Position numbers and translations under genes: made by a program | DNA from: Epithemia pelagica | Taxonomy: Eukaryota; Protista; Bacillariophyta | DNA length: 64,000 nucleotides | Assembly: GCA_946965045.2 (NCBI GenBank) | Contig: OX337232.1 | Location: forward strand, 496,001 to 560,000 | Reading direction: 5' to 3' | The notes under the pieces: generated by a model | The model's database searches: none | What the model was told of the DNA's origin: nothing | What the model saw: only the letters and a program-made list of their open reading frames with translations | Shown: piece after piece, positions 2,893 through 46,700 of the stretch | Numbering within the stretch: position 1 is the stretch's first letter | Layout: each line of letters opens with the position of its first letter

Positions 2893-5800
2893 ATGAGTGC
2901 TTCTTCGCTCAACGCGAGCAACAAATCGATGGAAGGTGGTGGTGAACCATCCTCCGCACAATCGCAACCCTCCAAATTGGACGCTGGCAGTAGTGGCGAT
3001 GGAGATGGTTCCTCTCAACAACAACACTCCCAATCTCATCAACAACAACAACCCTTGAGCAGCGATGCCTTGCAACAACAACAGCCCAAAAAGCACAAGG
3101 AAGATGTCGTGACAGGCTTGGCCTTGACCTTTCCCAAAGGAACGACCGCGGTGGATTTGGATGCCGTTCCAGCGAGTGAAGTGGGGGTGCAGGATCCGAC
3201 GCCGTACTTGTCGGCCTTGCGCGACGATCATTCCAGTCTCCGATTGGTGACGCGAGCCTTGCAACATTGTTGTCAATTTGCCGGTCAGGGCAGTCAAGCC
3301 ATGGCCACCAATGAATCATATTTGTATTGTTCTTCGTCCGTCGTGCATGTTCCCAGTTATACCAAGGTGGTCTCGCAACATGTCATTGCCAGTATTACGG
3401 AATGTTTGCAACAACACAAGGATCGCACCTGTCGGATTTTGGCGGCCCAAACCTTGGCTCTGGTGGGACAAGCGGCCTATGCGCAATTGCGACCGAGTCC
3501 ATTGCTGGCCACCTTGCGGGATGCGACCGTCGTGGCGCGGTTGGAAGATGAAGTCGGAGCCGAATTGCCCACGGCTCTCATTACCGCCGTTTTGCAGGAA
3601 GACGACGATGGTGTCTCGTCGCATGCCTTGCAAGCCTTGGGACGCTTTTGGAATTTGCAAGTGCCCGATGCCAGTAGTGCCACATCGGTCGCTTCCTCCG
3701 CGACTTCGTTTGGCGCCGTGGTCCATCGGGCCTTGCGATCCTTGACGGCGCCCGGCGTCGCCGTCACGGCACCGACCGTCCAAGCCTTGGTCGATGAAGA
3801 TGTGAGTATTGTCGCGACGGAATTGGCCACGCGGTGTTTGCAAACGGTCGTGGTGCCCCGATTGTGGTCCGTCGTGGAACGTGTCGTTCGGTATACCAAT
3901 CCCCTCGCCCTGGCGCGGGCCATTCCCGTCGTGACGGCCGCCCTCTGTTTTGCCTGGCAAACCTCGCAGGGACAACTCTTTGGCATGACGCGACACGTGC
4001 ATGCCAAACAATGGTCGACCGTCCATGCGGCCGAAATGGTACAAACCTGGGTCCACGCGGTCCTACTGCCCACCTTGCAACAAGCCGTGCAGGGTCATGT
4101 CTTGTGGACAACCGCCTTGGCCGCCTTGCAACTCGTCCAGGCCGGCAGTTTGATTGGACCGGCACCGCCCACGTGGACGACCACACTGGGCAAGAGTATT
4201 TGTCACGTGCAACACGAAGCCTTGACGGCAACACCCCTGTCGTTGCAACACAAGTTGCATGGAGTGGCCACCATTCTCGTGGCCAGTCGGACCGTACCCT
4301 TTCCCGAACGCTGTCCCCTCCTCTTTCCCTTGGTGGAACTGGTACTGGCCTTGCCCAGTACCACGCGCGTCCCCCTCGGTGTCCTGTCACCCGGTCTCGT
4401 CTTGCCGGAATATACCAATCATGCCGCGGCGACACGAAAATCCAATTCCTCCAACAACAACACTACTAGTAGTAGTAATACGTGGTTGGTCCAAGATGCT
4501 CGGTTGGGACATCATACGCGACGTCCCACCCGCATTCCCTATTGGACCGAATTGGCATTGAGTTTTTTTCTCGATGGTCCCACACCCTCCCGCGCCGATT
4601 TGACTTATACCCAAACCGCCGCCACAGCCGCGGCCGCCGCTGGTCCCTCGAGCAGTGCCGCGGCCAGCAGTATTCATGGGACCAAACAAACGGCCGCGGC
4701 GACCGCTGCCACGGCCGCGGCCGGGGGAGGACGGCCCGAAGCGCTCAAAAAGTTTTTTCATTTGGCTACCGTGTCCAGTGTCATTTCCGATGCTTCCTTT
4801 TCAAATGCCCGGTCCACACCCCTCTTACCCCGCGATGAATTGCTCGTGGCCTTTACGACCGTTGCCATTGCCTGTGGACGACGCTTTCGAGGAGGACCCG
4901 TCGATCCCACGCGAGCCGCCGCCGCGGCAGCCAGTGCCACCACAGCCGCGGCCGTGTCCTGGCCCTTGACCGATCCCAGTGCACCCGCTGTCGAAGAATG
5001 GTTGCAATTGTCCTGGATTGTCTTGACCGCCTTTGTGCCCTGTGTCAATATGCCACCCTCCCCACGCAAGGCGTCGTCCAATAACAATAATACCAACAAC
5101 AACAATGCTCCCACATATTTGGAGGAAGATTTGAGTTTGAGTACAGCGGGGTTGACCCTCTATGTCCAATTGTTGCAAGAATATTTGCATTTTGCCGGAC
5201 TCTTGCATCCCGGATCGTCCGTGGCACTCAAACTCGTGGCCAATGCCTGTCCACCGCACTTGTTGTGGGATCAATTGTCCGAATCAGCCTCCTTTTTGGC
5301 TCGTCTCGAAGCCGTCGATATGGGTTTGTTGGACAATACGACCAAATTACTCAATGAAATTGTCTCGCGCGAAATGACCAAGAGTGGAGGAATTCCCTCT
5401 CATCACATGAGACTCTTTTGCCTCGCCTTGGCCTCCGATCATTGGATGCAAGGACGCGTCGCCGCCATTCGCAAACAATTTGAATCCACGGGAGGATTTG
5501 GCGGAGGCAACAGTTCGCATAGCAATTCCAGTGGCAATCACAGCAACAGCATTCCACCCTTGGATGCCGCCTCGGCCCGGGAAATTATCTTGGCCCTCAG
5601 TCCGAAACGCATCTTGACCAAAATTTTTCAAGCTCATGTTCCACCCGTCGATGCCGAAGGGAAAAAGAAAAAGGATCCCATCAAACGCTTGACCGTCGAG
5701 ACGGTACGCGTATGCGTGGCTTGTATTGAAAACATTGCCCTCATTGCCTGCGATTGGCGCAAACGATTTCCACCCACGGCGGCCAATAGCAACTCGGCGC

Positions 5801-7377
5801 AACAACAAGAGCCCAAACATGTCGTGTCCGTCGCCGTCGGTGTCTTGCAAGGCAAGGTGGATGAAACTCCCATGAATGAGACGATTAAAACAATCATGGC
5901 CCCCATTTGTGAGGCAGCCGTAAGTCGGATTCAATCCTTTTACGAATCCGATTTGGGCGGTCAAGATTCCTTTCCCGCTTCGGAATTGGTGATGCAAAAT
6001 GTCAAGACCAAAATCAAACCCTTGGTGTCGTCCTCCTCGTCTAAACCACCCATTATTACCAAGGACGATTATGCTCGTGGCTACTTGATGCAATTGTGTC
6101 GCTCCCTCGTGCAGAGTTTGGCCGAACAAGCGGTTCATTCCTTGCCACCCACCGATACCGAAGGCACCCGTCCGGCTCGATCGACCAATTGGTTGCGGTT
6201 GGTCGTGCCACCACCCATTATGGCCGAATCGCGCGATGGACGTGTCTTGGGACATCGCCTACCCACGACGCATCAATCGTTTGGCTCTACGGCCCAGGTC
6301 GTTTCGGCCGGATCCGATCCGGTGGCCCTCCTCGTGGCCTATACACCGCGACGCTACTTTCGACACGATGGAGAAGATGAATTTCGAACCACCATTCTCG
6401 TACATGTCTACAATACAACCAATTTCGAATTTACCGATGGGTTACGATTGGAATTGGCGCTGGTGAATCAAGGGGAATACCATTTTGATCATGATCCCAT
6501 GATGGAACAAGATGTCTTGAAACGAGCCGTCATGGAATCACTGGGACTGAGCGAAGACGATCTCGTCCAGCCACCTTTGACATCGGCCTCGGTCGTGTGT
6601 CAACAAGAATTGACGCCGGGCGAATACTTGTCCTGGGAAGTCGCTTTGGATCAAATTCCGATCGGAGAAGGCATTTGTGTCATTCCCTCCGTGACCTTTC
6701 CCAATGTTCCCAAGGAACCTGTCGATTCGGGTGCCAAATGGATGGGGGAAGCCAAACCGCAAAGTGGCGATTCCAGTACGATTAATACGGGTGGAGGCGA
6801 AAGCACTGGTGGGAATCCAGGCGGAGAAGATGACTTTCAAGTCACAACGGGCGATGGTGGTCGTCGTGGTGTCAAAGATACTGAACCACCGTCGGAACCC
6901 GTTACCATTGTGGGAGAAGCCATGCCCTTGCCGCCCATGATTCAAATGCAACCTTGCCCGCTCATCTTTTTGCGGGATCGATGGGGCGATATGGATGCCT
7001 TTCGACTCTTGTGGTTCCGCCTGCCCTATCATGTCCCGGAAATTCCATTGGCCCTGGCACGAAACAAGGACGACATGGGTCATTTTGACAACAAGGCCAA
7101 TCATTTAATGCGAGCCTTGGCCAACATGTCTAGTTTGGTGTGGAATGGCGAGGCTATTCCGGGTGGCTATGTGACGCGTGCCTGGGCCTTTTCCACCCTG
7201 TATGGACAACGCATCTTGGCCGTCTTATCGGAATCGGATAGCGACAAGAAATTGGCCTTGCATTTCCGCGGCGACGATCGTCATGTCCTCTATGGACTCG
7301 TAGGACCCCTCCGCAACCGACAACGGGTCGTGGCGGCACTCACCCCGGAATTTGAACCAGTTCAACTGTTGGATTAG
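2893..7377 (+). CDS. 1494-aa HEAT/ARM trunk plus appendage protein, TPLATE (TSET beta subunit)-like; beta-COP/AP-5 beta superfamily
   Basis: Intronless ORF. N-terminal ITECLQQHKDRTCRILAAQTLALV and DDDGVSSHALQALGRFW resemble the TPLATE trunk as recalled. C-terminal AGSDPVALLVAY...ILVHVYNTT...LRLEL and EPVTIV...FRLLWFRLP resemble the TPLATE/beta-COP appendage. By-eye alignment only. Confidence 0.6.
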   Translation: MSASSLNASNKSMEGGGEPSSAQSQPSKLDAGSSGDGDGSSQQQHSQSHQQQQPLSSDALQQQQPKKHKEDVVTGLALTFPKGTTAVDLDAVPASEVGVQDPTPYLSALRDDHSSLRLVTRALQHCCQFAGQGSQAMATNESYLYCSSSVVHVPSYTKVVSQHVIASITECLQQHKDRTCRILAAQTLALVGQAAYAQLRPSPLLATLRDATVVARLEDEVGAELPTALITAVLQEDDDGVSSHALQALGRFWNLQVPDASSATSVASSATSFGAVVHRALRSLTAPGVAVTAPTVQALVDEDVSIVATELATRCLQTVVVPRLWSVVERVVRYTNPLALARAIPVVTAALCFAWQTSQGQLFGMTRHVHAKQWSTVHAAEMVQTWVHAVLLPTLQQAVQGHVLWTTALAALQLVQAGSLIGPAPPTWTTTLGKSICHVQHEALTATPLSLQHKLHGVATILVASRTVPFPERCPLLFPLVELVLALPSTTRVPLGVLSPGLVLPEYTNHAAATRKSNSSNNNTTSSSNTWLVQDARLGHHTRRPTRIPYWTELALSFFLDGPTPSRADLTYTQTAATAAAAAGPSSSAAASSIHGTKQTAAATAATAAAGGGRPEALKKFFHLATVSSVISDASFSNARSTPLLPRDELLVAFTTVAIACGRRFRGGPVDPTRAAAAAASATTAAAVSWPLTDPSAPAVEEWLQLSWIVLTAFVPCVNMPPSPRKASSNNNNTNNNNAPTYLEEDLSLSTAGLTLYVQLLQEYLHFAGLLHPGSSVALKLVANACPPHLLWDQLSESASFLARLEAVDMGLLDNTTKLLNEIVSREMTKSGGIPSHHMRLFCLALASDHWMQGRVAAIRKQFESTGGFGGGNSSHSNSSGNHSNSIPPLDAASAREIILALSPKRILTKIFQAHVPPVDAEGKKKKDPIKRLTVETVRVCVACIENIALIACDWRKRFPPTAANSNSAQQQEPKHVVSVAVGVLQGKVDETPMNETIKTIMAPICEAAVSRIQSFYESDLGGQDSFPASELVMQNVKTKIKPLVSSSSSKPPIITKDDYARGYLMQLCRSLVQSLAEQAVHSLPPTDTEGTRPARSTNWLRLVVPPPIMAESRDGRVLGHRLPTTHQSFGSTAQVVSAGSDPVALLVAYTPRRYFRHDGEDEFRTTILVHVYNTTNFEFTDGLRLELALVNQGEYHFDHDPMMEQDVLKRAVMESLGLSEDDLVQPPLTSASVVCQQELTPGEYLSWEVALDQIPIGEGICVIPSVTFPNVPKEPVDSGAKWMGEAKPQSGDSSTINTGGGESTGGNPGGEDDFQVTTGDGGRRGVKDTEPPSEPVTIVGEAMPLPPMIQMQPCPLIFLRDRWGDMDAFRLLWFRLPYHVPEIPLALARNKDDMGHFDNKANHLMRALANMSSLVWNGEAIPGGYVTRAWAFSTLYGQRILAVLSESDSDKKLALHFRGDDRHVLYGLVGPLRNRQRVVAALTPEFEPVQLLD

Positions 7378-15617: not shown

Positions 15618-18600
15618 TCATACACTGGCAACATGCTTGATGGGTGTTCCGGATGGTTGTCGTTGTGGAGGCGTTTTCGTACCAGCATCCGTCCCTGGAA
15701 TGGTTTCGTCCGCATCATAAAACAAGACATGTTTGGCCTTGTTGTTGGCGCTGCCATGGTCCCCGGTCGAGAGCGCTTCCATCTTTTTGGCCACTTCCTT
15801 GGCGGCCTCAATGACTTTGCGTTCCGACGATATTTTGCTTTCCAAAAAGCTGGCTCGTGCTGCCACACTTTCATGACCCCCAGGGCTCGGATTCGTAGCA
15901 TCGTCGACACTGCTTTCTTCACTGTCGGTGCTACGGCCACTGTGTGTCCCCAGTTGTTTCACTTCGGCCAGTGACCGTAATCGATTGTCCTCGTGTTGGA
16001 CTTCCCACAGGGCCAGAAATTCACTATAACTAATCTTGCCATCCCGTGTCAAATCGGCTTCGTCAATAATGGCATCAATTTCGGATTGTGGAAATTCATC
16101 CCCCAAGAGGGATCGCAAATTGGCCTTGGAAATGTATCCCGAATCATCGGCATCAATCCGATCAAAGGCTTCGGCCAATCGCTCCTCGCTAATGGCTCCC
16201 TGTGCTTCAATCGTGGCCGCCAAGAATTCGGTATATCGAATCTTTCCCGTCCCATCCAAATCCTGTCAAGACAAAGTATATAAGGATCCACAAAACAAAG
16301 AAACAAGAGCAATAGGGAATGTACACCCAACAATAAAACCGGCATCACATACAACAAATGACACGCACAACGAGAGAGAACGCATCCGTGTGAGCATTTG
16401 GATTGAATGAACGTGGTTTCGCCACTACAAGAACGTACCACTGCATCAAAGACACTTCGATATTCGTCTTCGGAATATCCGGCATCCCGGAGGGCCGCCT
16501 TGAATTCGGCATATGACAATTGTCCGTTGCGTTCGGTATCGTAGGATTGAAAGACTTTGCGCAAAATACCAATTTCCGTCGTGGTGGATTTGTGCGCACA
16601 AATCAGCAAGGCAATCTTTTTGATTTTGGCATATTTGGAATATGCCAAAATACTTTGATTGGCCGATTCCAATTCTTCTTGATAGGGATTGCGGACCGTG
16701 GCGGTAAAGCGACGATTCAACCACGAGGCACTCAGGGCGACCGTGGCCGTGACCCGTTCCAGGGGATCGACACAGAGCAAGTCTTGGACAAAGGCCTTGG
16801 CCTGGGGACTGATCCGTTTCCATCGTCGGCCTCGCATCTCGTATTGCCCCTTCATGATTTGTTCGACAATGACGCGTCGTTTCCGCCCGTAAAAAGGCAT
16901 TTGCGACGACAAGAGCATAAAGGCAATGACACCGACCGACCACAAATCCGCCTCTTTGGAATAGGAACCTGTGGTTGTGATTGTTGTTGTTGCATCCACA
17001 GGGAATGTCCATGAATGGTCGATGAACCATGGAATGTGAATTGCAAGCCCCATGATTCGTGTGGGACAACGTCATTTGGAAAATGGAGTGTCAATCGTTT
17101 GTCCAGATGGTTGAGAGAAGTGTAATTGTGTGTGTGTGTTTTATTGGGAGGAACGAAACAGAGAAAACAAGTCAACAACCACCAACGAGATCAATGACGT
17201 GAAACAGTGCACAACGAAGCAAAGAAGAAAAAGTATAGTTGGAACGGTGAGATGCGAAATGTCCAAAAGAACGAGCATAAGGGGGTTCCCACCAAGATAT
17301 TGAACGTACCTTTGAGGACTTCGGGAGCCATGGTATATCTGCAATAAAAGGTATATGCGACGGAATCACCATGCACCACATTCCGGCACACACAAGATAC
17401 AAAAATGAACAAGTGAGAGACGGAACACAAAACAGGAAATCACACAATGGAAATCACCAAACCACGTCGTTCTCTTCATATCGAATCGTCGTTGTTGTTG
17501 TATTCGTAACGAACGGAGAGAGGATTATGGCATATTTATATATACGTACATGGTTCCGACGCCTTCGGTCATGGGTTCACTGTCCTGGCTGCCAAATTTG
17601 CGACTGAGTCCAAAATCAATCAATTTAATTTCGGCCTGTGGTGCTTGATTGACAAAGAGGATGTTTTCATACTTTAAGTCGCGGTGACTGATATTTTTGG
17701 AATGCATATAGGAAATGGCCGAGGTGATACTGGCCACAATGCGGGCCGCCTCCGCTTCGGTATAGGGATCGCGACTGTACAAGTCGCCACCGGCACACAA
17801 TTCCATGACTATAAAAATTTGATGTCGATGTTCAAAGGTTTCCAAGGCCTTGACAATGTGGGGATGGTCCAATTTTTTCAAAATGGCCACTTCATTTTTC
17901 AATTCCTCCACAAAGGTCGGATCCGTCACGCGATTCAAGTGAATGGATTTCATGGCGCAAACCATTTCGTATTTGCTGCCCGTACTGCCCGTACTACTCG
18001 TGGCACGAGCACGACTCCCATTGGCACTGTCGACCAAATTGTCATCGTAATACTCGGACGACGGCGACAATGCTGCTTGTTGTTGTTGTTGATGGGCCGC
18101 ATCGTTGTAATCTTCCACCACACCTCCGGCCGCGGCATGCAACAAACTGGTTCGACTCGATTGGGAATCGACCAAGACATTGCGATCGCTATCCGTTTCG
18201 TCTTGCGACTGTTTCCAACACGACTGTTGCCAACACTTGGCTAGGGCCGGTCCAACGAGGGGAATGTCATAACACAATTTCAATTGTTTTTCGCGTTGAA
18301 AATGGGGTTGCAAACTCTGTCGGGCCGATCCCCCAATCACTTGACTCCGTTTGCGAACCTTGGCCACACTGCCCATACTGCCCACGCCCAAGACGGACAG
18401 AACTTCGTAATAAAAGAGCGGATCGCGATCCTTTTGTTCGCGCATCAAATTGCCCCGCAATTCCTTGGCCCGATATTTCGGTGTCGTATTGGTTGTTGTT
18501 GTTGTTGTATGCAATGATGGTGGTGTAGTTGTGGTTTCGGTCGAAGTGGGATGAAAGCGAGTCCCTTGAATGGCATTGTCGTCGGGCGCAAAGCGAACAC

Positions 18601-18694
18601 CGGCCGTCGGAGAATGTGAGTGGCCATTGGACGAATTCTTATTATTTGGTGGTGTGGTAGGATCCTTCATGCTCTTCTTGTTGCTGGTGGACAT
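15618..18694 (-). CDS. Calcium-dependent protein kinase A (kinase plus 4 EF-hands), 4 exons (18694-17550, 17338-17310, 16968-16439, 16262-15618)
   Basis: [23 protein letters not shown], spliced GTIYTMAPEVLKGSY, DLWSVG. EF loops DTERNGQLSYAE, DLDGTGKIRYTE, DADDSGYISKAN, DLTRDGKISYSE. All three introns are GT-AG and in phase. Confidence 0.92.
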
Positions 18695-19800: not shown

Positions 19801-21627
19801 ATGACCGAATCAAGTACCACGATGACAGCCACAACAACAACACGACAAGAATACCACAGTGACATGGGAGCGTCCAGCCAAGCAACGTTGCGAGCAGCAC
19901 CAGCACAACAGCAACCAGAAGCTCCGTGCTTGCCGTGGTTGCCGGTGTGGCATCACCGCCTCTGGCACCCACGGCCCTCGCTGTGGGACGACGATTCCCC
20001 AAAAGTGGACAAGGACGACGAAACACCCGAATCGGATTGGTTGCAACCCGACAACAACGACGACAAGGACGAGGAGGAGAAACCTCATTTTCCGTTGGAC
20101 GATTCACTGCCGACGAGAAGGAGCCATTCCAGTCCCCCACCATCACCAAAGCAACGACCCGATCCACAAGGCAAAACTTGGAATGAGGCGGTTGCGGATT
20201 CGAAAAAAGAGGAGGAGGAGGAGGAAGAAGAGTTGCAAGCATCCCTACCATTATCAGACGACGACGACGAGTCGGACGTGAGTTGCCACCACGACGACGA
20301 GTCGAGTGGTGTGATGGAGGAACCAGTCACACCACCACCATTGGTACCCACGGATGCTGTCACACCCGACCCCGAACCGACGACGCACTCGGCCTTGTGG
20401 TTCACACTGTTGACGCACCTGCTCCACGAATCCCAACACTATCGACACCAAGTGGAGGAATTGCAACAGCAAGTCAAACAATTGCAGCAGCAACAACAAC
20501 CACGTCCACAAGACATGTGGAACGAGGAGGACCATACCATTGAATTTGTGGCCGAGGACACGAATCAGGACAACGAGAAAGAGGAGAATGACGCACAACA
20601 AGACGAAGAAGAAACAGAAGAAGCAGACGCGTGGGGCTTGTTTGAGTTTTCCGAACGACCCAGTTCCAATTCCCCGGACAAAATGGTGGCCGCATCATCA
20701 TCCTCATCCAGTTCCCGGACCAAACTCCAAGCCTTGGAGCAAGCCCTTCACTCCACACAATGGCAAGTCTCATCGTTCGAGCAAGGCCTGCAGAACCACG
20801 AGGCGCACCTGGAAACGCGATTGCAAACCGTGGTGCAAGACTTGCATGGTCAAATGGCCGACTTGCAAGTTTCCTTGTACCAACAACAAGAATTGCAAGT
20901 GCAACAATTGCAAGAACGAGGCCGCTTGGAAACGGCCATGATGCGACAAATCATGGACGAACGCGTTCAAGACTATGAAACCCAATTGCAACACGTGACC
21001 AAACAACTGGCCGACTTGCAGCAACAACAATTGTCGTTGCTGCGGCAACCGCTGGATTCCACCACGGTGCCCACGACGGTCCATACCTCATCGTCGTCGT
21101 CGCCGTCCTTGTCGCTGGCACAAACACGGACCGAAGAAGAAACGACCAGTCTCTTGGCGCTCAAACCATCGTTGGAGGAAACGCTCACGAGCAGTCCGAC
21201 ACGTCCCAGGCAACCGCAAACTGTGTTTCGCACCAAGCCTACAACCAGTACTCCCTTGGCCGAGTGGATGTCCCGGACCGAAACCAGCCCCACAACCACG
21301 ACGACGATGACGACGACCCTGTCGTTGCCCCCACCCGTTCTACTGTCCTCACCGCCCTCGAAACAAGTGTCTGTGCCACACGCTGGTCGGTCGACGACAG
21401 CTACAGACGACTTGCTGCTCCTCCACAATCGACCCTCGTTTGAAGAACGAGCCGAACGTCGCAACCAATTGCGGCGACGACGCCAAAGTGTCGAATCCTT
21501 TATGCGCGCCCAAGTCCAACACATTCGGCAACGCAATTGGGGCGATTCATCGTCGTCGATTGTGGAAAGTATGGCCGGTCATCAGTCCTTGCCCACTCTC
21601 ATGTTGCAACCGCACGAGCAGCCGTGA
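19801..21627 (+). CDS. 608-aa acidic, low-complexity, Gln-rich coiled-coil protein; the only intact member of a 6-copy family
   Basis: Uninterrupted ATG-TGA ORF with heptad segments (HYRHQVEELQQQVKQL; LETRLQTVVQDLHGQMADLQ...) and a basic C-terminal helix (RRRRQSVESFMRAQVQHIRQRNW). Confidence 0.8.
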   Translation: MTESSTTMTATTTTRQEYHSDMGASSQATLRAAPAQQQPEAPCLPWLPVWHHRLWHPRPSLWDDDSPKVDKDDETPESDWLQPDNNDDKDEEEKPHFPLDDSLPTRRSHSSPPPSPKQRPDPQGKTWNEAVADSKKEEEEEEEELQASLPLSDDDDESDVSCHHDDESSGVMEEPVTPPPLVPTDAVTPDPEPTTHSALWFTLLTHLLHESQHYRHQVEELQQQVKQLQQQQQPRPQDMWNEEDHTIEFVAEDTNQDNEKEENDAQQDEEETEEADAWGLFEFSERPSSNSPDKMVAASSSSSSSRTKLQALEQALHSTQWQVSSFEQGLQNHEAHLETRLQTVVQDLHGQMADLQVSLYQQQELQVQQLQERGRLETAMMRQIMDERVQDYETQLQHVTKQLADLQQQQLSLLRQPLDSTTVPTTVHTSSSSSPSLSLAQTRTEEETTSLLALKPSLEETLTSSPTRPRQPQTVFRTKPTTSTPLAEWMSRTETSPTTTTTMTTTLSLPPPVLLSSPPSKQVSVPHAGRSTTATDDLLLLHNRPSFEERAERRNQLRRRRQSVESFMRAQVQHIRQRNWGDSSSSIVESMAGHQSLPTLMLQPHEQP

Positions 21628-31095: not shown

Positions 31096-33751
31096 ATGGA
31101 CCCAGTGATGGGGAACGAGTCCACCACCAGCACTACTGCGGACAAGACCCCAACCACCATGCCGCTTCCCGTGCTGCCTCACCACCATCCACCACCACGA
31201 CGAGGACGACGACGACCAGGCCGTCCCTATCATTCGCGACGGTGTCGCATGTCCCAGTTGCAAGGCAATTTAATGCGACAACAAACGCATCGAGATCCCT
31301 TCCAGTACGTTTTTTGGTTTGATTGATTCGTGGACGGTTTGGACTTTTTTCTACTACTGGATCGTTTCTCACGAATTGTTTGTGGTTCTCTCTGGTTGTT
31401 GTGGATTGTTGTTGTGATTGTGGTGATGGTTTGTTGGCACACATCATGTTGCAGAATTTATGAAATTTTGGAGGTTTTGGGACAAGGGAGTTTGGGTCGC
31501 GTGTGTCGGGTCCGCAAACGATTGGAGGCTGTCGGTGGATCGGCCAATCCTCAATTTGTCGTGCAACACAAGGGCTGTTGTTTTCCCTGGATTGCCCAGT
31601 GGATGCGATGGTGGACGCATCATCGACCCTCTGTCTTTACCACGAGTAGTAGTGACACGGCTACAGACGAGGACGACCACGAGCAAGACGACAATGACAC
31701 GGACGAGGACGACGAACATCCAGCCGTTTCCGGACGGTCGACTCTTGACGCGGCATCGGCCTCTTCCGAAGAAGCTCCAGTTGTGGTTGCCACCGCCGCG
31801 GCCGAATCCGTCACGACCGGTCCCAGTTCCTTCTCCACCGTAACCAGCAGTTCCAGTAGTAGTAGCAGTAGTAGTACAACCAGTGCCAACGCCAAACGAA
31901 CCTTGTTGTCATCGGCGTCATCCTCGACCGTGTCGGGTCCCTACAACATTCATATTGTCTGTCCCAAACCCATGGCCTTGCAACAACCACAACGACCACC
32001 ACCCTGTTCTCCCGCCGGTGTGGCTCGCCAAAGCCAATACGGACTAAAACACAACACGTCTTCGCTCAGTTCCTTTAATCCTCACAGTATTCGCAGCAAC
32101 AATGGTACCACCACGGCTCCCATGGCCCAATATGCACTCAAGTCCATTCATTTGAATCGGTGTGGCAATCCAGCCTTTGTGGAGGAACTCAAGAACGAGG
32201 TGGAAATTCTCAAGGAATTGGATCATCCCACTATTGTCCGAGCGATTGAAACCTTTGATTACCAACATCGCTTGTACATTGTCCTGGAACTCTGTCGCGG
32301 AGGAGGCGATTTGTATTCACGGGATCCCTATCCCGAAGCCGTGGCGCAATCCATTGTCCACAGTTTGTGCAGTGCTGTCGCCTACCTCCATCGACGAGGC
32401 ATTGTGCATCGGGATTTGAAATATGAAAATGTCATGTTTGTCAATTGGCATTCCAATGATATCAAATTGATTGATTTTGGCTTGAGTCAAAAATTTGTCC
32501 CCCTGCCACCCTCGCCGCGACGACGACAACGACGACACTCAAACAAACAAGCAGAGGAGGAGGAACACGAGGCACCGGAACCACAATACATGCACGATCC
32601 GGTCGGAACCTTGTATACCATCACCCGAATTGTTGTCGGGTGAATATACACATCAAGTCGATGTCTGGAGCCTCGGGGTGATTGCCTTTATGCTACCCTC
32701 CAGTAGTTTGCCCTTTTATGGACGAACCCGCGTCAAAACCATTCAACGCATTCTCAAGGGCAAGTACCGATTTTTGCCCCACGCGCGATGGAAGACCGTG
32801 TCCCGTGCAGCCCATGACTTTGTCCAAGCCTGTCTCTGTTTGGATCCCGAGGAACGACCGACCGCGCGACAAGCCCAGAAACTTGACTGGTTGGTGCAGT
32901 CGTCCCGGAATTCCCATGCCTTCAGTGCTACTGGACCACCGACTTTATCATGGACGAACAATGACTGTGACAACAATGGCATGGTGCTCAGTCCGACGGA
33001 CAATGAACCACACTCCTGGCACAACCAACCATCCGATGGTTCGGACTCGGGAGAAGACGGGCAAGTCCAGCAACAAGAACTTCTACTACTACCCGAATTG
33101 ACGGATCAAGAGGTGGAACAAATGAATCGTATTCAAGCTTCCATTTTGGCCTTTGCCGGATATTCGCGACTCAAAAAGTTGGCCTTGTTGATTGTGGCGT
33201 ACAAGAGTACCAGTGACGAATTGGGATTTTTGAATCACATGTTTGAACGATTTGATTTGGAGCATGATGGTGAGATCTCTCGTTCCGAATTTGTACGGGT
33301 CATGACCGCGTCCTTTCCCAACACGAGCTTGACACTGGACGACATCATTGACGTGGATGGAACCGGAACGGTGCATTATTCGGAATTTTTGGCCGCCACC
33401 TTGGAAGCCGTCACGGGCACCAACGAGGAGGAGGATGGCAGTGTGTACTGCGGTTTGTTGGATGAAGCACGATTGGCAGAGGCCTTTGACCGAATGGATT
33501 GTGATGATAGTGGGTACATTACCCTCTCGAACTTGTCGCAATTGTTGGGCCCCAATGTACCAGACCATTATGTGCAAGGTGTGTTGGATGAAGTGACCCA
33601 GCAAGTCGACGGCACCATGACGACGGCGGCAACCAAGGACCAACCCCTCAATCCCGTGTCTGGTCGGCCCGGAGATTCGTACATTTCGTACCAACAATTT
33701 CGGGACTTGTTATGGTCCACCGACCAGCATTCTTGTCTGGCGGAGGAATAG
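31096..33751 (+). pseudogene. CDPK B copy 1, frameshifted
   Basis: Intron 31305-31454. A 2-nt loss at the MAPE codons (about 32620; ACCATCACCCGAA vs ACCATGGCACCGGAA in copy 2) breaks the frame, and an 18-nt deletion precedes EF-hand 2. The start codon is uncertain. Confidence 0.75.
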
Positions 33752-40780: not shown

Positions 40781-40870
40781 AAGTATTACGCTGTAGAAGG
40801 TTTCCCAAGGTCGTACGGTGTCAAGGAAGTGAGTGCTCTGGCAAGATAGGACAGAGAGAAGGTGAGAACA

Positions 40871-42613
40871 ATGGCGCGAGCAGAAGACTCGGCAAATGTT
40901 TCACCCGCTTCAGGTGCAGCACCGGCTAACACGGGAGACGATGAGGACTATCAAGACGCCTCAGCGGAAGACCAGACTGGAACCGACAATCGAGAATCCG
41001 ACTTTGGATTCCGAACACTCGACGAAACGCTTCAGGGTCTTAATGAGAGAAGACAAAGAAGAACAAGCGATGAAAACAACTCGGATAAAAGTTCAAAGAG
41101 CGATGACTACCCGTTAGATACAGATACCCGATTCATGGTTGGGGGACTGGCAATTGAGCTGGTGGAACCAGGTTCAAGGGGATATGGTGTCGCAGATCAA
41201 GGACCTTTATATCGGAAAGAGAACAGGGAGAAGATGTCTTCGGAGAAGAAACAAGATCTCTTCAAGGAAGCCGTGAAGACTTTGCAAACAAAATATACTT
41301 TCACGAGTATGAGTTTGACCGATGAAAAGAAGTTGGATGAGTGTTATAACACTGCCATCATGATTTCCAAAACCAAGGACACGCATATGGTTTACGATAT
41401 GCATGACGTGTTCACGATTGTGTTCCCTAAGATGAAGGGATCCCGGAGTATCGAGTCTCGTACTGTAGATCTATATTTAAATTATGAGGAAGTTACTCCC
41501 GATGAAGTTGCAGCCAGTTGTGAATGGTATCGCCGTTGGACCAAGAAGGATTGGTACCGGGAGAATTTGGTACTAACCTACAAGCATCTGGAAAATAACA
41601 TGACTCAAAGTCTGTTTGAAAAATGCTACGAACAGTTTGAGACTTACCCTACCATTCAACAAGGGGGTCCTCTGCTCTTCGTCATTATGATGAACATTCT
41701 GGTTTCAAGTTTGGAAGCCGCTATTGATCACTTGAAAGATTTGGTTAAGAATTTGAAGATTAATGAGTTTCAAGGTGAAAATGTTCTTCGTGTTGTAAGT
41801 TTGATCCGTGGTGCACACAAGCGCTTGAAATGGGTCAAGAAAGTTCCAGAGCGCTTTAATCAGCAAGTGCTAAAGGTCATGCAAACTTCATCCGTTGGCA
41901 AATTTAACTCTTACTTTCGCTATATCGAGCAAACTTACACAATGGCACGGGACATTGGGAAACTTCAAGGGGATCCTGATGACACTGGTGGTTTGGAAGT
42001 TGATGTTCTACTTCGCTTAGCCGAAACTAAGTATAATGAATTATGCAGCAGCAATGACTGGCACGGTTCTAAAACGAAGGGAAAGAACTCCGTGTTCAAT
42101 GCCCAAGAAGATGCCAAGAAAGCTGCCAATACTGCCTCTTCTGGCAATGGCAAGCCCCAACCAATTTGTTGGAATTGTGGCAAGCCGGGACATACGGCAC
42201 CGAAGTGCACGGAACCCCGCAATGAACAGAAGATTGCTGCGAACAAAGAGAAGTTTGGTTCGAAGAAGGCAGCCAATGGGACGAGTTCCTCAAATTCTGG
42301 AGCAGGTGGTGCATCCGGAAAGTGGGCGCCTCCAAAGTCGGACGAGCGAAATCGACACGTGATTGATGGAAAACATATGTTCTACAACCATCGCACGCAT
42401 CGTTGGGTTCCGGATCGGACGCATTCTTCCAACCAAGATGCGAGTGCTCATGCCGCGCGAGCCGACAACGCCAGCACGACCAGCACGCTCACTGGAGCGA
42501 CTGGTACTGTGGCTGGTTCTACTGTCAATCGCGCTGAGCTCGATGCTGCAGTCGCAAACGTGGCACGCTCCGTCGATCAGTCGCTTCGCAGTCTCGTGGA
42601 GCATTTCTCCTGA
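40871..42613 (+). CDS. gag: Copia Gag
   Basis: 580-aa ORF with a CCHC knuckle CWNCGKPGHTAPKC; ends in TGA in frame with pol. Confidence 0.9.
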   Translation: MARAEDSANVSPASGAAPANTGDDEDYQDASAEDQTGTDNRESDFGFRTLDETLQGLNERRQRRTSDENNSDKSSKSDDYPLDTDTRFMVGGLAIELVEPGSRGYGVADQGPLYRKENREKMSSEKKQDLFKEAVKTLQTKYTFTSMSLTDEKKLDECYNTAIMISKTKDTHMVYDMHDVFTIVFPKMKGSRSIESRTVDLYLNYEEVTPDEVAASCEWYRRWTKKDWYRENLVLTYKHLENNMTQSLFEKCYEQFETYPTIQQGGPLLFVIMMNILVSSLEAAIDHLKDLVKNLKINEFQGENVLRVVSLIRGAHKRLKWVKKVPERFNQQVLKVMQTSSVGKFNSYFRYIEQTYTMARDIGKLQGDPDDTGGLEVDVLLRLAETKYNELCSSNDWHGSKTKGKNSVFNAQEDAKKAANTASSGNGKPQPICWNCGKPGHTAPKCTEPRNEQKIAANKEKFGSKKAANGTSSSNSGAGGASGKWAPPKSDERNRHVIDGKHMFYNHRTHRWVPDRTHSSNQDASAHAARADNASTTSTLTGATGTVAGSTVNRAELDAAVANVARSVDQSLRSLVEHFS

Positions 42614-43714
42614 TGGGGTGGCCGCTGGGTGGCGTCTTTGGACGGTCCATCTGGTGTAGGCCGCCCCTATCATCGCTATGGTCCCAGGAGGGAAACCTGG
42701 GTGACCTCTATCTTCTCATCCTTACTCGACTGTGCGCTCATGAGGGGGATGGGAGACCTATTTTGGCTTTATCTGCCGTGGTTATTCCTACTGTATCTCG
42801 CCTTGTTCACAGGTCTTTGTTGTACCATGAGCTTGGTCGAGCAAGACTCCAGGTCCATAGCCACAGCTGCTCATGCTGTGAGCACTCCACCAAGACCGCC
42901 GAAACCTCGTTTGAGACAATCGGTATGCTCCTATGGCCTCAAAATGAAAGCAAGACGTCGAGTCCATCGTGTGATCTGGCGCAACAACCGTCCTTACCTT
43001 TGGTACAACACGGACGACTGGGATACCTGGACCAACCCGAGAACGTCGTCTCCAGAGGGAGCGACAAACGACACGACGAAGATTCTTCGAGACCAAATCT
43101 TTGGTGGATTGTCGCTTTGGAGTTTGGCCCTGAAGGACGATTCCTTGATACCACAAGTCGATCCAGTTCGTCAGTGGCAGACAATCAGATTGTTGAGTCA
43201 TGGGGCGTGGCTTGGAGCTGACCTTACAAGACGAAAGACCCCTTGGAAACTGATGTTGCGACAAAGCATGGTTGCAGCAGCCAATTTTGGACAACTGAAA
43301 AGTTTTCAAGCCGTCACTGTCCCATTGGACCAGGTTGATTGTTCTGGTTTGAATAGTGAGACCATTGGCGAATTGTCACGTCGCATGACGGTGTACATGA
43401 GCCAACGAGAACAAGATGTGCTCCCCATTGTGATCGATTCCGGAGCATCCAAATCGTTGACGCCAAATCTCCAAGACTTCGTCGGACCAATTCAACCGGC
43501 CGAAATCTCATCGTTGAATGGCTTGTCTGGAACGACAGCAGTCCGAGGTTTTGGCACGGTCCAATGGATGGTTAGAGACGTTATGGGGGTAGCTCGAACG
43601 ATCAAGACGAAAGCATACTACGTACCAGAAGCCTCGATTCGTTTGTTCAGCCCGCAAACGTTCTTTCAAGAGCAGCAAGCTGGAAAACTGGTACTCGACC
43701 ACAAGAGAACGTAG
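42614..43714 (+). CDS. pol: Copia pol part 1: hydrophobic (TM-like) spacer plus aspartic protease
   Basis: Same frame as gag; LFWLYLPWLFLLYLALFTGLCC, then IVIDSGAS and RLFSPQ protease motifs; ends in TAG at 43712-43714. Confidence 0.85.
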   Translation, partial: WGGRWVASLDGPSGVGRPYHRYGPRRETWVTSIFSSLLDCALMRGMGDLFWLYLPWLFLLYLALFTGLCCTMSLVEQDSRSIATAAHAVSTPPRPPKPRLRQSVCSYGLKMKARRRVHRVIWRNNRPYLWYNTDDWDTWTNPRTSSPEGATNDTTKILRDQIFGGLSLWSLALKDDSLIPQVDPVRQWQTIRLLSHGAWLGADLTRRKTPWKLMLRQSMVAAANFGQLKSFQAVTVPLDQVDCSGLNSETIGELSRRMTVYMSQREQDVLPIVIDSGASKSLTPNLQDFVGPIQPAEISSLNGLSGTTAVRGFGTVQWMVRDVMGVARTIKTKAYYVPEASIRLFSPQTFFQEQQAGKLVLDHKRT

Positions 43715-46700
43715 TTGCAAATCCCGGATGGGACATGGTTAGAATTTCCATATAACGCCGGTAGTAATCTTCCCTTTATGCTCACAGGAAATGTGAATCA
43801 CATGGGACTTACCTTCGAAGATGCAACGATGTTGGGTGATGGATATTCCGTCAAGTCGGCCTTGTCCACGGCAAATCACAGTGGCTTGATGAATGTGGCC
43901 GACGAGACTAACCAGAACTTAACGGCATCGCAAAGGGAGCTCTTGCTGTGGCACTGGAAGCTCGGCCATGCCAACATGCAATGGATTCAGACGCTCTGTC
44001 GAGATCCAAAAGCAAACAGTCGACGGTTAGTGTTGGAGACAAAAGAAGCAAAGACAACAAGTTGCGTCATACCTTTATGCGCAGCTTGTATGCTCGGGAA
44101 GCAACATCGCCGAACGCCTCATTCGAATCACGGTGGATTGGTGGATGGGAAAGACAGTATGCTCAAGAGGGAGCACCTTCAACCAGGAGATTGTGTTTCG
44201 ATTGATCAATACGAATCAACGATTCGTGGACGTCTTTCGCACACGTATGGAAAAGAGAGGACCGACGAACAATATCGAGGAGGAACTCTGTTTGTCGACC
44301 ATGCCTCTGGCATGATCTTCTTGGCGAACCAAGTGTCCCTTCGAGTTGGTGAGACGCTCAGTTCAAAGAAGAAGTTTGAGCGGTTCGCGGAGGAATATGG
44401 TGTCAAGATACGAGAGTACCGCGCCGATAATGCGCCGTTTGGCCGAGAAGAATTTCTGAACCACGTACACGGAAGTGGTCAACGAATCAGCTTCTCAGGC
44501 GTTGGGGCACATCACCAGAATGGAGTCGCGGAAAGGGCAGTAAAGACCACGATGTCTTGGGCCCGTACTATGTTACTACACGCGACCATTCATTGGCCCG
44601 AGCAAATGCACTTGCATCTTTGGCCCTTTGCCGTTGAGCACGCCGTCTGGCTATGGAACCACCTTCCGAATCGCCGGACGAACATCGCTCCACTCGAAAT
44701 CTTCTCTGGCATCACATTCTCCGATTTTCACCACCTTCAGCGGAGTCACGTATGGGGATGTCCTGTGTATGTCCTGGACCCCAAGCTTCAAGACGGAAAG
44801 AAGTTGCCTAAATGGCAAGCCAAGGCACGACGTGGTCAGTTTCTTGGGATTTCACCCGACCATTCTACTACTGTTGGTCGTATACTCAATCTTCGTTCGG
44901 GATTCATCAGCTCACAGTATCATGTGGTCTACGATGATTTATTTTCTACCGTCCCTAATGCCGATTCTGGCGGGCTCTTAGATGAGCCAAATTTAAACGG
45001 TGACTTTTGGCAACGCTTGCTAGCGGCGGGCACTGAATCTAATCTGCCTGACGAAGATGATGATGATGGTAATTTGGAGCTTGGAGACGAGTGGATGACC
45101 GATTCCGAGATTGCGGAACGGCATGCCCGACGTCAGTCACGTCCTCCTCGTCCCTTGCCCACTCCTCCTTTACCCATTGTTCCTGTTCCAACGTCTGTTG
45201 ACGGGGGGAGAGGCCGAGCCACAAGGAACCATGTTCGATTCCAACCTCCACTGGAACAGCCAACAGAGCGAGGGCAAGGACCAGAACCACCTGCAGAACC
45301 CGGTGAATTGCCAAGTCAAGATCAAACAGGTGGATTGTTGCCTCCAGAGGGAGCTCAAAATGGTGAATTGTTGCCTCCAGAGGGAGAAGCCGACGAAGCA
45401 GAACATGAGATCGTTTTTGAAGACGACTCAGACGATGACAGCACGACAAGACAAGAAGAGATTGAACGCCGTAATAGGCATTTTGCCGAACCCGATCCAG
45501 CATCACATGGGAGAGGCAAAAGAGAACGTCGTCCCAATCGTCACTTGTTCGATGAGCGATTGTGGGCATCGACTGCTTACTTTCCTCGTGGGTCAACAAG
45601 GCCAAAGCAAAAAGTGAGACGAGAGCTGTTAAATGCACAGTTCCTCCAATCCCTTACCTGGGACACTCTGACCAGCGCAATCGCGTCCAAATCCAAAGAC
45701 CTATTGGCAATGGACCTGTGGCTGGATCGTCATACGGATCCGGACACACGCTGGATTGAAGAGATGCATCCTATGGCATTGGCAACGAAGGCCGATGCTG
45801 CAGACAATCCCTCATGGGAACAAGCCATGAACGGTCCCGATAAAGACGGGTACTGGGAGGCTTGCAAGAAAGAATACAACACGCTTCATGAGAAGATGAA
45901 AGCATGGGAAGTCGTGGCAAGAGAGACATGGATGAATGTCTTACCTGGCACATGGGCGTTCAAGTGCAAACGGTATCCCGATGGATCCGTACGCAAATTG
46001 AAAGCACGGTTTTGTGCACGGGGGGACAAACAAGTCGAAGGAGTCGATTTCTTTGACACGTTTGCACCCGTTGTGAATTGGACGACTGTGCGTCTAATGA
46101 TGATTCTTTCCATCATTTTGAATCTGTCCACGGTACAGGTTGATTACACGGCAGCATTTGTACATGCGCCGATTGACAAGGATCCCAATTGGGACAAGAT
46201 GACAGAAGAGGAACGAAAGAAAAGTGGCGTGTATGTTGAGATGCCGAGAGGGTTTGCGCAACCAGGGAAAGTCTTGAAACTTACACGATCGTTGTATGGC
46301 CTAAAGCAGGCACCACGCAACTTCTTCCTTCATCTGAAAAGCAAATTGGAACAAGTCGGACTCAAATCGCAGGAACACATTGATCCGTGTCTGTTCATGT
46401 CCGACAAAATAATCGTGCTGGCCTATGTGGACGACACATTGATTTACAGCCCCAAACGCGAGTGGATTGATGAGTTTCTTGGGAAACTCCAGAATCAACA
46501 GAACGTGACACTCGAGATCGAAGACAGTGTAGCCGGATTTCTCGGCGTACACATCGAACGCAACGATAGTGATGGCACTATCACGTTGACGCAGAAAGGC
46601 CTGATCAAGCGAATTGTAGAGGCGCTCCACATCGGAGACAAACCCATGAAACGGACACCAGCATCGAAGGATCCTCTGGTGGCAAACAAAAATGGGACTC

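Follow-up and report, generated by a model that had tools for sequence, protein, structure and literature searches.

The window analyzed here is a stretch of 64,000 nucleotides from the diatom Epithemia pelagica (assembly GCA_946965045.2, contig OX337232.1, positions 496,001 to 560,000). Its forward strand carries, at 2893..7377, an uninterrupted, ATG-initiated open reading frame (ORF) whose translation has 1494 residues, exactly as had been claimed in an earlier note that described an intronless ORF of this length and took it for a probable TPLATE homolog. P0001, the public gene model, matches the ORF product with 100% identity over 99% but is shorter by 12 residues, consistent with a start at M13 (nucleotide 2929), the second methionine. 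A homolog search recovered 54 close homologs with 29-66% identity over most of the length, all with source names reading "hypothetical" or "unknown", and an exhaustive profile search gave 120 family members, with lengths of 1100-1750 aa. Alignment of the homologs shows conservation across the entire protein length: the ORF is a real gene, kept across diatoms. Its features are collected in Table 1.

Table 1. Features of the gene and its product, in window coordinates
Feature	Position	Strand	Basis
Complete intronless CDS, 1494 aa plus stop	2893..7377	+	ORF reading, ATG start
N-terminal Ser/Gln-rich low-complexity extension, aa 1-94	2893..3174	+	occupancy 0.3-0.7, conservation 0.1-0.3
Alpha-solenoid (HEAT-like) trunk, aa 95-1095	3175..6177	+	AF2 model mc1acc4a8b1e1, pTM 0.78
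Trunk motif W703-x12-PCV	4999..5046	+	AtTPLATE NWTEPALEVVEVCRPCVKW, equal spacing
Trunk motif YVQLLQEYLH, aa 757-766	5161..5190	+	AtTPLATE YLKLLVRLCH at corresponding place
Appendage (ear) beta-sandwich subdomain, aa 1134-1273	6292..6711	+	AF2 model m120ba714ee3b; Foldseek, VIA-align, motifs
Disordered Gly/Ser/acidic loop within ear, aa 1280-1329	6730..6879	+	pLDDT <50, model residues 185-234
Appendage platform subdomain (alpha/beta), aa 1334-1489	6892..7359	+	AF2, Foldseek, VIA-align

Trunk and ear architecture

The AlphaFold2 models bear out the earlier description of an alpha-solenoid N-terminus followed by a beta-rich C-terminus. Preceding the solenoid is an extension that is weakly conserved in the alignment columns and mostly missing in the shorter family members. 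The trunk consists of helical repeats throughout and is broken by about nine disordered, weakly conserved inserts. Conservation among distant members is widest over roughly the first 350 positions of the trunk profile, with the distant matches aligning best at positions 6-350. Pfam gives weak HEAT_2 matches in 12 of the 33 trunk members, and nothing beyond these was found by Pfam in the ORF protein, seven divergent members or any member of the trunk and ear alignments. The C-terminal region (aa 1096-1494) is modeled with a pTM of 0.72 as a beta-sandwich and an alpha/beta lobe. The sandwich subdomain begins with AGSDP...VYNTT and includes LSWEV, and the platform subdomain includes EPVTIV...QPCPLIFLRDRWGD..AFRLLWFRLP and ...RAWAF...; within the platform F1370, R1371 and W1374 are invariant, and W1431 and A1432 nearly invariant, in the alignment of the closer, pennate set (A1).

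This layout of a trunk and a two-lobed ear, i.e. a sandwich plus a platform, is present in every full-length family member; the ear of the shortest member, P0126 (1110 aa), begins at about aa 806. Furthermore, the trunk profile alone had retrieved distant proteins whose C-termini then proved to match the ear HMM, indicating that trunk and ear travel together. As the protein has both the alpha-solenoid trunk and the C-terminal bilobal appendage by which large subunits of the AP/COPI/TSET superfamily are recognized, it is a trunk-plus-ear large subunit of this superfamily. In Foldseek and VIA-align comparisons the ear matches the COPI and AP2 ears, the best match being beta-COP, and its likeness to beta-COP exceeds that to gamma-COP. 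It differs from the AP2 alpha and beta2 appendages (1b9k, 1e42) and the gamma-COP appendage (1pzd), to which identity is 10-14%, in having extra inserts. Structure searches with the 1001-residue trunk (Foldseek against PDB, ESM Atlas, VIA-align) were non-discriminating, returning generic solenoids such as importins, SF3B1, CAND1, symplekin and AP-3. Sequence searches of the PDB, both single-sequence and profile, found no adaptin or COPI chain, their matches being designed HEAT repeats or noise.

Probable affinity to TPLATE

Animals and fungi have lost TSET, an ancient endocytic coat which to our knowledge has been studied in two systems only. The beta-adaptin-like large subunit of this TSET/TPLATE coat is TPLATE, and we consider it likely, though not proven, that the gene is its highly divergent ortholog in diatoms, in agreement with the reading of the earlier note. 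Among the readings of this gene it is the most likely one, and it draws on the nearest non-self clusters in the ESM Atlas, on motifs found by eye to be colinear, and on a domain layout that corresponds to TPLATE minus its plant-only anchor.

In the Atlas feature comparison the ORF protein scores 0.95 with its own family, 0.88 and 0.87 with two plant clusters named 'protein TPLATE' (200 and 194 shared features, respectively) and 0.84 with beta-COP. Family member P0013 shows the same order, with 0.96 for its own family, 0.90 and 0.89 for TPLATE, 0.87-0.85 for beta-COP and 0.82 for AP2 alpha, scores of 0.87-0.90 being at or under the tool's 'lead only' line. TPLATE is thereby the nearest non-self neighbor of the family by these features, and the ten best named neighbors are all adaptin/COPI large subunits. 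An Atlas fold search with the ear brought up clusters of beta-COP but none of TPLATE.

Established TPLATE references are the Arabidopsis (AT3G01780/NP_186827.2), Dictyostelium (XP_639969.1) and Blastocystis (CBK25442.2/OAO17754.1) proteins. A post hoc comparison by eye, with AtTPLATE NP_186827.2 and the Blastocystis TPLATE (as given in the supplement text of a paper) as references, picked out about ten short motifs colinear with AtTPLATE, including W-x12-PCV in the trunk and G-SDP, x-N-x-T, EPV and F-x-x-L-W-x-x-L-P in the ear. Four peptide segments had been quoted earlier as matching plant TPLATE in order, namely CLQQHKDRTCRILAAQTLALV (from aa 171), DDDGVSSHALQALGRFW (around aa 236), AGSDPVALLVAY...VHVYNTT (aa 1139-1177) and EPVTIV...FRLLWFRLP (aa 1334-1378); all are present in the translation and, by eye, have plausible and colinear counterparts in AtTPLATE. 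The spacing of the W703 motif recurs as W-x12-PCLKW in an unlabeled reference TPLATE listed just before AtTPLATE in the query file. Within A1 W703 is invariant and C717 nearly so, and the strict W-x12-PCV pattern occurs in 22 of the 65 members; the patterns behind this and the other regex and shuffle counts were drawn up after seeing both sequences, and hence provide no fair test of significance. In the second trunk motif Y757, L760 and Q762 are invariant in A1. At the start of the ear AGSDPVALLVAY..VYNTT can be set by eye against GSSDPCYIEAYH..IINLT of AtTPLATE, and in the platform EPVTIV..AFRLLWFRLP against EPVILR..EFFRLWPSLP and RAW against KTW. The counterparts in the Blastocystis TPLATE, likewise by eye, are GGSDPLLIVGSF..IFNAT, SVTWEAPL for LSWEVAL, and AFRALWDRL. 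Many of the motif positions shared with TPLATE are invariant or nearly so in A1.

TPLATE also resembles the diatom family in its domain order, an alpha-solenoid trunk and then a canonical sandwich/platform appendage, and in having no Pfam family. In AtTPLATE the ear starts at about aa 773 and the last 115 residues form a plant-specific anchor; the diatom protein keeps the canonical ear and ends there, in line with the restriction of the anchor to plants and as expected outside them. It differs from TPLATE in a trunk about 200-300 aa longer because of the disordered low-complexity inserts, in the additional 94-residue N-terminal extension, and in the 50-residue disordered loop and a helical insert within the ear. 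A further difference is the lack of a statistically significant sequence match between the two, with Pfam, PDB profile and exhaustive HMM searches all yielding no supported link. The trunk profile (856 positions) run against 1.84 billion representatives at E<=1e-3 gave no plant-TPLATE-like match, as judged in this nameless library from protein lengths, cluster look-ups of ten second-tier matches (which returned no names) and the C-terminal matches of the ear HMM. The distant matches were also considered as a non-diatom bridge to canonical TPLATE and rejected as such, since the uL3m gene beside the distant member P0088 is closest to those of centric diatoms.

Competing identities among coat subunits

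An alternative we regard as unlikely is that the family is a TSET-like or adaptor-like large subunit other than the TPLATE ortholog, being either the missing second subunit (a TSAUCER ortholog, or a replacement that keeps the ear) or a lineage-specific paralog with its own complex. TSAUCER, whose trunk is of the gamma/alpha type and binds the sigma-like TSPOON, has never been detected in diatoms and is suspected by the authors reporting this to be hidden or replaced there; moreover, the trunk of about 1000 residues, a long alpha-solenoid as in TASH3/TSAUCER of the same type of complex, is closer in length to the TASH3 trunk (104-894) than to the modeled TPLATE trunk (1-467). However, in plant TASH3 an SH3 domain takes the place of the appendage, whereas the diatom family always has the appendage and Pfam finds no SH3 domain in the ORF protein, which favors TPLATE over TSAUCER. 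The Atlas neighbors are likewise TPLATE and beta-type subunits, the trunk motifs W-x12-PCV and Y.KLL match AtTPLATE specifically by eye, and the ear is nearer to that of beta-COP than to that of gamma-COP. As TSAUCER is undetectable in diatoms, there is also a slim chance that the family, detected only in diatoms so far, is a large subunit filling one or both large-subunit roles of a remodeled TSET-like coat rather than a simple TPLATE ortholog; the long disordered inserts, together with the ear loop, might then act as lineage-specific docking sites, for instance in traffic towards the frustule or silica deposition vesicle.

That the protein is a highly divergent beta-COP paralog in a COPI-related coat seems quite improbable to us, even though beta-COP accounts for the best structural matches of the ear and for the best Atlas clusters with a name, and also contains three ear motifs shared with TPLATE (SDP, N.T and FR.xW). 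Against it, no Adaptin_N, Coatamer_beta_C or Coatomer_b_Cpla match was found at E<=10 in 33 trunks and 30 ears, the ear profile retrieved no COPI chain from the PDB at E<=10, and the beta-COP hallmarks LSGFADPVYAEA, FRSMWAEFEWENKV and WILGEY are missing from the ORF translation. Diatoms also possess a distinct protein, about 970 aa long and highly conserved, that is their canonical beta-COP (e.g. Phatr3_J54511/EEC47781.1 and Seminavis CAB9524456.1). The TPLATE clusters outscore beta-COP in the Atlas, and TPLATE itself is known as a beta-COP-like member of the superfamily. An unrelated solenoid with an appendage-like domain and a function outside vesicle coats, for which FANCB/FAAP100 and BBS9 offer precedents, is very improbable, given that in the ear comparison these fall clearly short of the COPI and AP2 ears in score, that the ten best named Atlas neighbors belong to the adaptin/COPI class, and that by eye the order of TPLATE motifs is kept along the whole protein. 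Finally, the beta subunit of AP-5, which the earlier note had named as its main alternative, is the least probable identity: AP5B1 is likewise a divergent solenoid-plus-ear protein of patchy distribution and weak sequence signal, but the 33 trunks and 30 ears give no match to the AP5B1-type models that our Pfam copy presumably includes, AP-5 clusters are missing from the Atlas neighbors, the motifs match TPLATE by eye, and the family members far exceed AP5B1, with its length of about 880 aa, in size.

The TSET coat of diatoms

Endocytosis is poorly understood in diatoms, a group of major primary producers, as is their membrane traffic to the silica deposition vesicle; the suggestion that the gene has a role in silica or wall membrane traffic is pure speculation. 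Both TCUP, with a mu-homology domain, and TTRAY1/2 have been reported from diatoms, so that a beta-like partner is to be expected; in Phaeodactylum the TCUP entry is Phatr3_J43047 and the TTRAY entry Phatr3_J46356. If the gene indeed encodes TPLATE, then by analogy with the Arabidopsis TPC and Dictyostelium TSET its trunk would cradle the longin domain of the mu-like TCUP and pair with a second large subunit, its ear might be a hub at which the beta-propeller subunits TTRAY1/2 and accessory proteins interact with it, and the assembled complex may act in vesicle formation at the plasma membrane or in the endosomal system. A true diatom TPLATE would provide the TSET core of diatoms with a concrete large subunit, and would show how fast TSET large subunits can evolve; on this account the "missing" TSAUCER, for which the authors reporting its absence suspect escape from detection or replacement, may be hidden rather than lost.

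Diatom proteins have already been listed under the name "TPLATE" in a recent survey (Penot-Raquin et al. 2025). The entries examined here carry the beta-COP hallmark motifs, and the table of the authors themselves assigns the Phaeodactylum entry to KEGG coatomer beta. The family described here is absent from the sequence files of that survey. The diatom "TPLATE" of the survey is a different protein, which looks like the ordinary Golgi coat protein beta-COP. The divergence of the present family could hide it from searches seeded with plant or amoebozoan TPLATE, which would then retrieve beta-COP in diatoms instead. The family is likely to bring a correction to the literature, and if it is the true diatom TPLATE, the results to be revisited would include the figure of 81% of stramenopile libraries with TPLATE, the co-expression network of this subunit and its abundance in Tara Oceans data. 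Among the genes most co-regulated with the "TSET core" of the survey is gamma-COP (Penot-Raquin et al. 2025).

The gene and its relatives among diatoms

The putative TPLATE gene is a single unbroken ORF of 1494 codons that begins at an ATG; it was found uninterrupted where the earlier note had placed an intronless gene, and all four peptide segments quoted there could be located in its translation, hereafter the window protein. The public gene model at the same locus, P0001, is identical to it but lacks 12 aa, as expected if translation began at the second methionine. A word-indexed search with the window protein recovered 54 homologs at 29-66% identity and 85-99% length coverage. The closest named source is Epithemia clementina (66% identity), further ones being Seminavis robusta, Nitzschia inconspicua, Fistulifera solaris, Pseudo-nitzschia and a Bacillariaceae MAG; their homologs are labeled "hypothetical" or "expressed unknown protein" throughout, with no precomputed Pfam domain in any of the 54. 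Conservation in the family alignment extends from end to end, broken by the ~94 N-terminal residues and by several inserts of low complexity. As judged from sequence comparison, this is a genuine gene, under selection throughout the diatoms.

An exhaustive hmmsearch with a profile of the trunk (aa 95-1095) against 1.84 billion representatives, a library that carries no protein names, matched 120 proteins, among which nothing resembled plant TPLATE, beta-COP or adaptin. The second-tier matches are 1100-1750 aa long (E 1e-129 to 1e-20), and cluster look-up of ten of these gave "hypothetical protein" or no entry. An HMM of the C-terminal ear also matches the C-termini of these second-tier proteins, which had been recovered with a query containing no ear, so trunk and ear are inherited together. 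One highly divergent member adjoins a uL3m gene, which among named proteins comes nearest to those of centric diatoms (65-70% identity). As none of the members could be attributed to an organism other than a diatom, the family seems to span the diatoms and to evolve fast. The most divergent members lie on two gene-dense and apparently intron-poor eukaryotic metagenome contigs (L002:1-15720 and L001:1-10359), with neighbors that include PPR proteins, uL3m, SMC and transaldolase; the uL3m of L002 is closest to those of Skeletonema, Thalassiosira and Cyclotella.

Domain architecture and the probable affinity to TPLATE

Pfam searches yielded nothing but a sub-threshold HEAT_2 match in the window protein, and at most the same in seven divergent members and in 33 trunks and 30 ears searched one by one (E<=10). 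Likewise, no adaptin or COPI chain was found among PDB sequences at E<=10 with either a whole-family profile or a broad ear-alignment profile. For structure prediction the protein was divided at residue 1095 and each half was modeled with family alignments. The models bear out the alpha-solenoid N-terminus and beta-rich C-terminus claimed from the sequence: residues 95-1095 are a confidently modeled alpha-solenoid (pTM 0.78), interrupted by about nine disordered inserts, and residues 1096-1494 form a beta-sandwich and, beyond a disordered loop of 50 residues, an alpha/beta lobe (pTM 0.72). Foldseek matched the C-terminal part to COPI and AP2 appendage domains (E-values 1.7e-7 to 6e-4), the best match being 9qpq_H, residues 711-953, a numbering that fits beta-COP, and the remainder gamma-COP, AP2 alpha and AP2 beta2. 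The ESM Atlas fold search ranked beta-COP clusters (TM 0.45-0.46 by query) above gamma-COP (0.38-0.39) for this part. Trunk searches returned only generic solenoids, among which the AP-3, AP-2 alpha and gamma-COP trunks were present and not outstanding. As a solenoid trunk followed by an appendage ear is the defining layout of an AP/COPI/TSET large subunit, the window protein, on these predicted models, has the large-subunit layout of this superfamily; we show both this domain architecture and its conservation across the family.

TPLATE combines the solenoid with a conserved, canonical appendage of sandwich and platform and, in plants alone, a 115-aa anchor, whereas in TASH3/TSAUCER an SH3 domain replaces the appendage (Yperman et al. 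2021). The presence of the ear hence favors the beta-like TPLATE over TSAUCER. In ESM Atlas the window protein scores 0.95 with its own family, and the nearest other Pfam-less clusters are two Streptophyta "protein TPLATE" clusters, at 0.88 and 0.87 (200 and 194 shared features), scores that lie at the tool's "lead" threshold; of the named clusters, those of beta-COP come first, at 0.84. The family member P0013 (45% identical) repeats this ranking with higher scores (own family 0.96, TPLATE 0.90 and 0.89, beta-COP 0.87-0.85, AP2 alpha 0.82). The ear starts at about residue 773 in AtTPLATE versus about 806 in P0126, the shortest member (1110 aa); disordered inserts account for the surplus length of the window protein.

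Reference TPLATE sequences, as given in the supplementary files of Penot-Raquin et al. 2025, were compared by eye and post hoc. The colinear segments that the earlier note had matched to plant TPLATE have plausible counterparts, in the same order, in the AtTPLATE sequence, and the motif matches are colinear along the window protein.

Motifs of AtTPLATE and their counterparts in the window protein, matched by eye
Motif	AtTPLATE	Window protein	Remark
1	LRSND..R..ALLQALQQSAAGRD	LRDDHSSLRLVTRALQHCCQFAGQGS	
2	SAVCKKLAFDLIRS	DRTCRILAAQTLAL	
3	DPDVTAAAVSILAAL	DDGVSSHALQALGRF	
4	FREELVAM	PRDELLVAF	
5	W-x12-PCV	W703-x12-PCV	identical spacing, also in another reference TPLATE
6	YLKLLVRLCH	YVQLLQEYLH	
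7	RLIWTIAEH	MRLFCLALASDHW	
8	GSSDPCYIEAYH...IINLT	AGSDPVALLVAY...VYNTT	
9	EPVILR...EFFRLWPSLP	EPVTIV...AFRLLWFRLP	
10	KTW	RAW	

Many of the matching positions are invariant or nearly so in the alignment of the closer (pennate) members, and strict motif patterns are present in 15-48 of 65 family members. The ear of the TPLATE from the stramenopile Blastocystis (CBK25442.2) also matches by eye, with GGSDPLLIVGSF...IFNAT, AFRALWDRL and SVTWEAPL, the last corresponding to LSWEVAL in the window protein.

ESM Atlas features, motif order and size all point the same way, and the window protein is quite probably TPLATE; our confidence is held at this level because the motif matching was done by eye and after the fact, beta-COP shares three of the ear motifs, and the Atlas scores are at the "lead" threshold. 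A large subunit of a TSET-like coat that is non-orthologous to TPLATE is a much less probable reading. A beta-COP paralog, also unlikely, would account for the ear motifs SDP, N.T and FR.xW, which beta-COP carries too, but the TPLATE clusters outscore those of beta-COP for both the window protein (0.88 versus 0.84) and P0013 (0.90 versus 0.87). AP-5 beta and an unrelated protein bearing an ear are both unlikely, as the motif order matches TPLATE.

By analogy with Arabidopsis TPC and Dictyostelium TSET, the mu-like TCUP would bind, through its longin domain, to the trunk of a diatom TPLATE, and the ear would be the hub on which accessory proteins and the beta-propeller subunits TTRAY come together, in a complex acting in endocytic or related vesicle formation.

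The published diatom "TPLATE"

Within the literature searched, a diatom TPLATE is reported only by Penot-Raquin et al. 2025 (PMC12167817) and its preprint. For their Phaeodactylum protein, Phatr3_J54511 (EEC47781.1), the authors' own Data S6 gives coatomer subunit beta, KEGG K17301 (KofamKOALA E = 0), and lists the Pfam domains Adaptin_N, Coatomer beta C-terminal region and Coatomer beta appendage platform. Among the entries examined in the "validated by phylogeny" TPLATE file, those from diatoms, brown algae and pavlovophytes show the beta-COP hallmarks LSGFADPVYAEA..., INRT and FRSMWAEFEWENKV, the last being FRAMW... in pavlovophytes; the Blastocystis entry is the sole TPLATE-like one. As outgroups, the taxa listed for their TPLATE tree include AP-beta only, although AP/COP paralogues are referred to in the methods. 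Co-regulation with their "TSET core" is strongest for a set of genes that includes gamma-COP, and their TSPOON1 and TSPOON2 are annotated as AP-4 sigma and AP-3 sigma.

In all three genomes cross-checked the published accession differs from the family member: KAG7367160 versus KAG7374387/KAG7349424 in N. inconspicua, CAB9524456 versus CAB9521264 in Seminavis and GAX25219 versus GAX09956/GAX14482 in Fistulifera. Furthermore, six family-specific motifs are absent from 4.3 million characters of the supplementary text. Together with the beta-COP hallmarks, this suggests that the published diatom TPLATE is, going by the entries examined, probably beta-COP, and that the family of the window protein appears, in the portion of this source covered, to be so far unreported. 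That one of the large subunits evades detection in diatoms is a suspicion voiced by the authors as well (PMC12167817).

Other features of the window

The neighbors of the TPLATE-like gene are unrelated to trafficking and include three protein-kinase genes and a retroelement. An intron probably separates the two ORFs of the first kinase gene.

Features of the window
Feature	Coordinates	Strand	Remark
TPLATE-like gene	2893..7377	+	
Protein-kinase gene with EF-hand domains (calcium-dependent kinase type)	16049-18694	-	split in two ORFs
Protein-kinase-domain gene	31330-33751	+	
Ty1/copia-type LTR retroelement	40862-47434	+	three consecutive ORFs: gag with zinc knuckle; Pol beta-barrel domain; GAG-pre-integrase and RVT_2
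Protein-kinase gene with EF-hand domains (calcium-dependent kinase type)	58450-60825	+	
ORFs of 361, 328 and 608 aa	8105-10216 and 19801-21627	+	no Pfam match

The two stretches with the Pfam-less ORFs have an unusually strong AT skew of +0.21 to +0.22.
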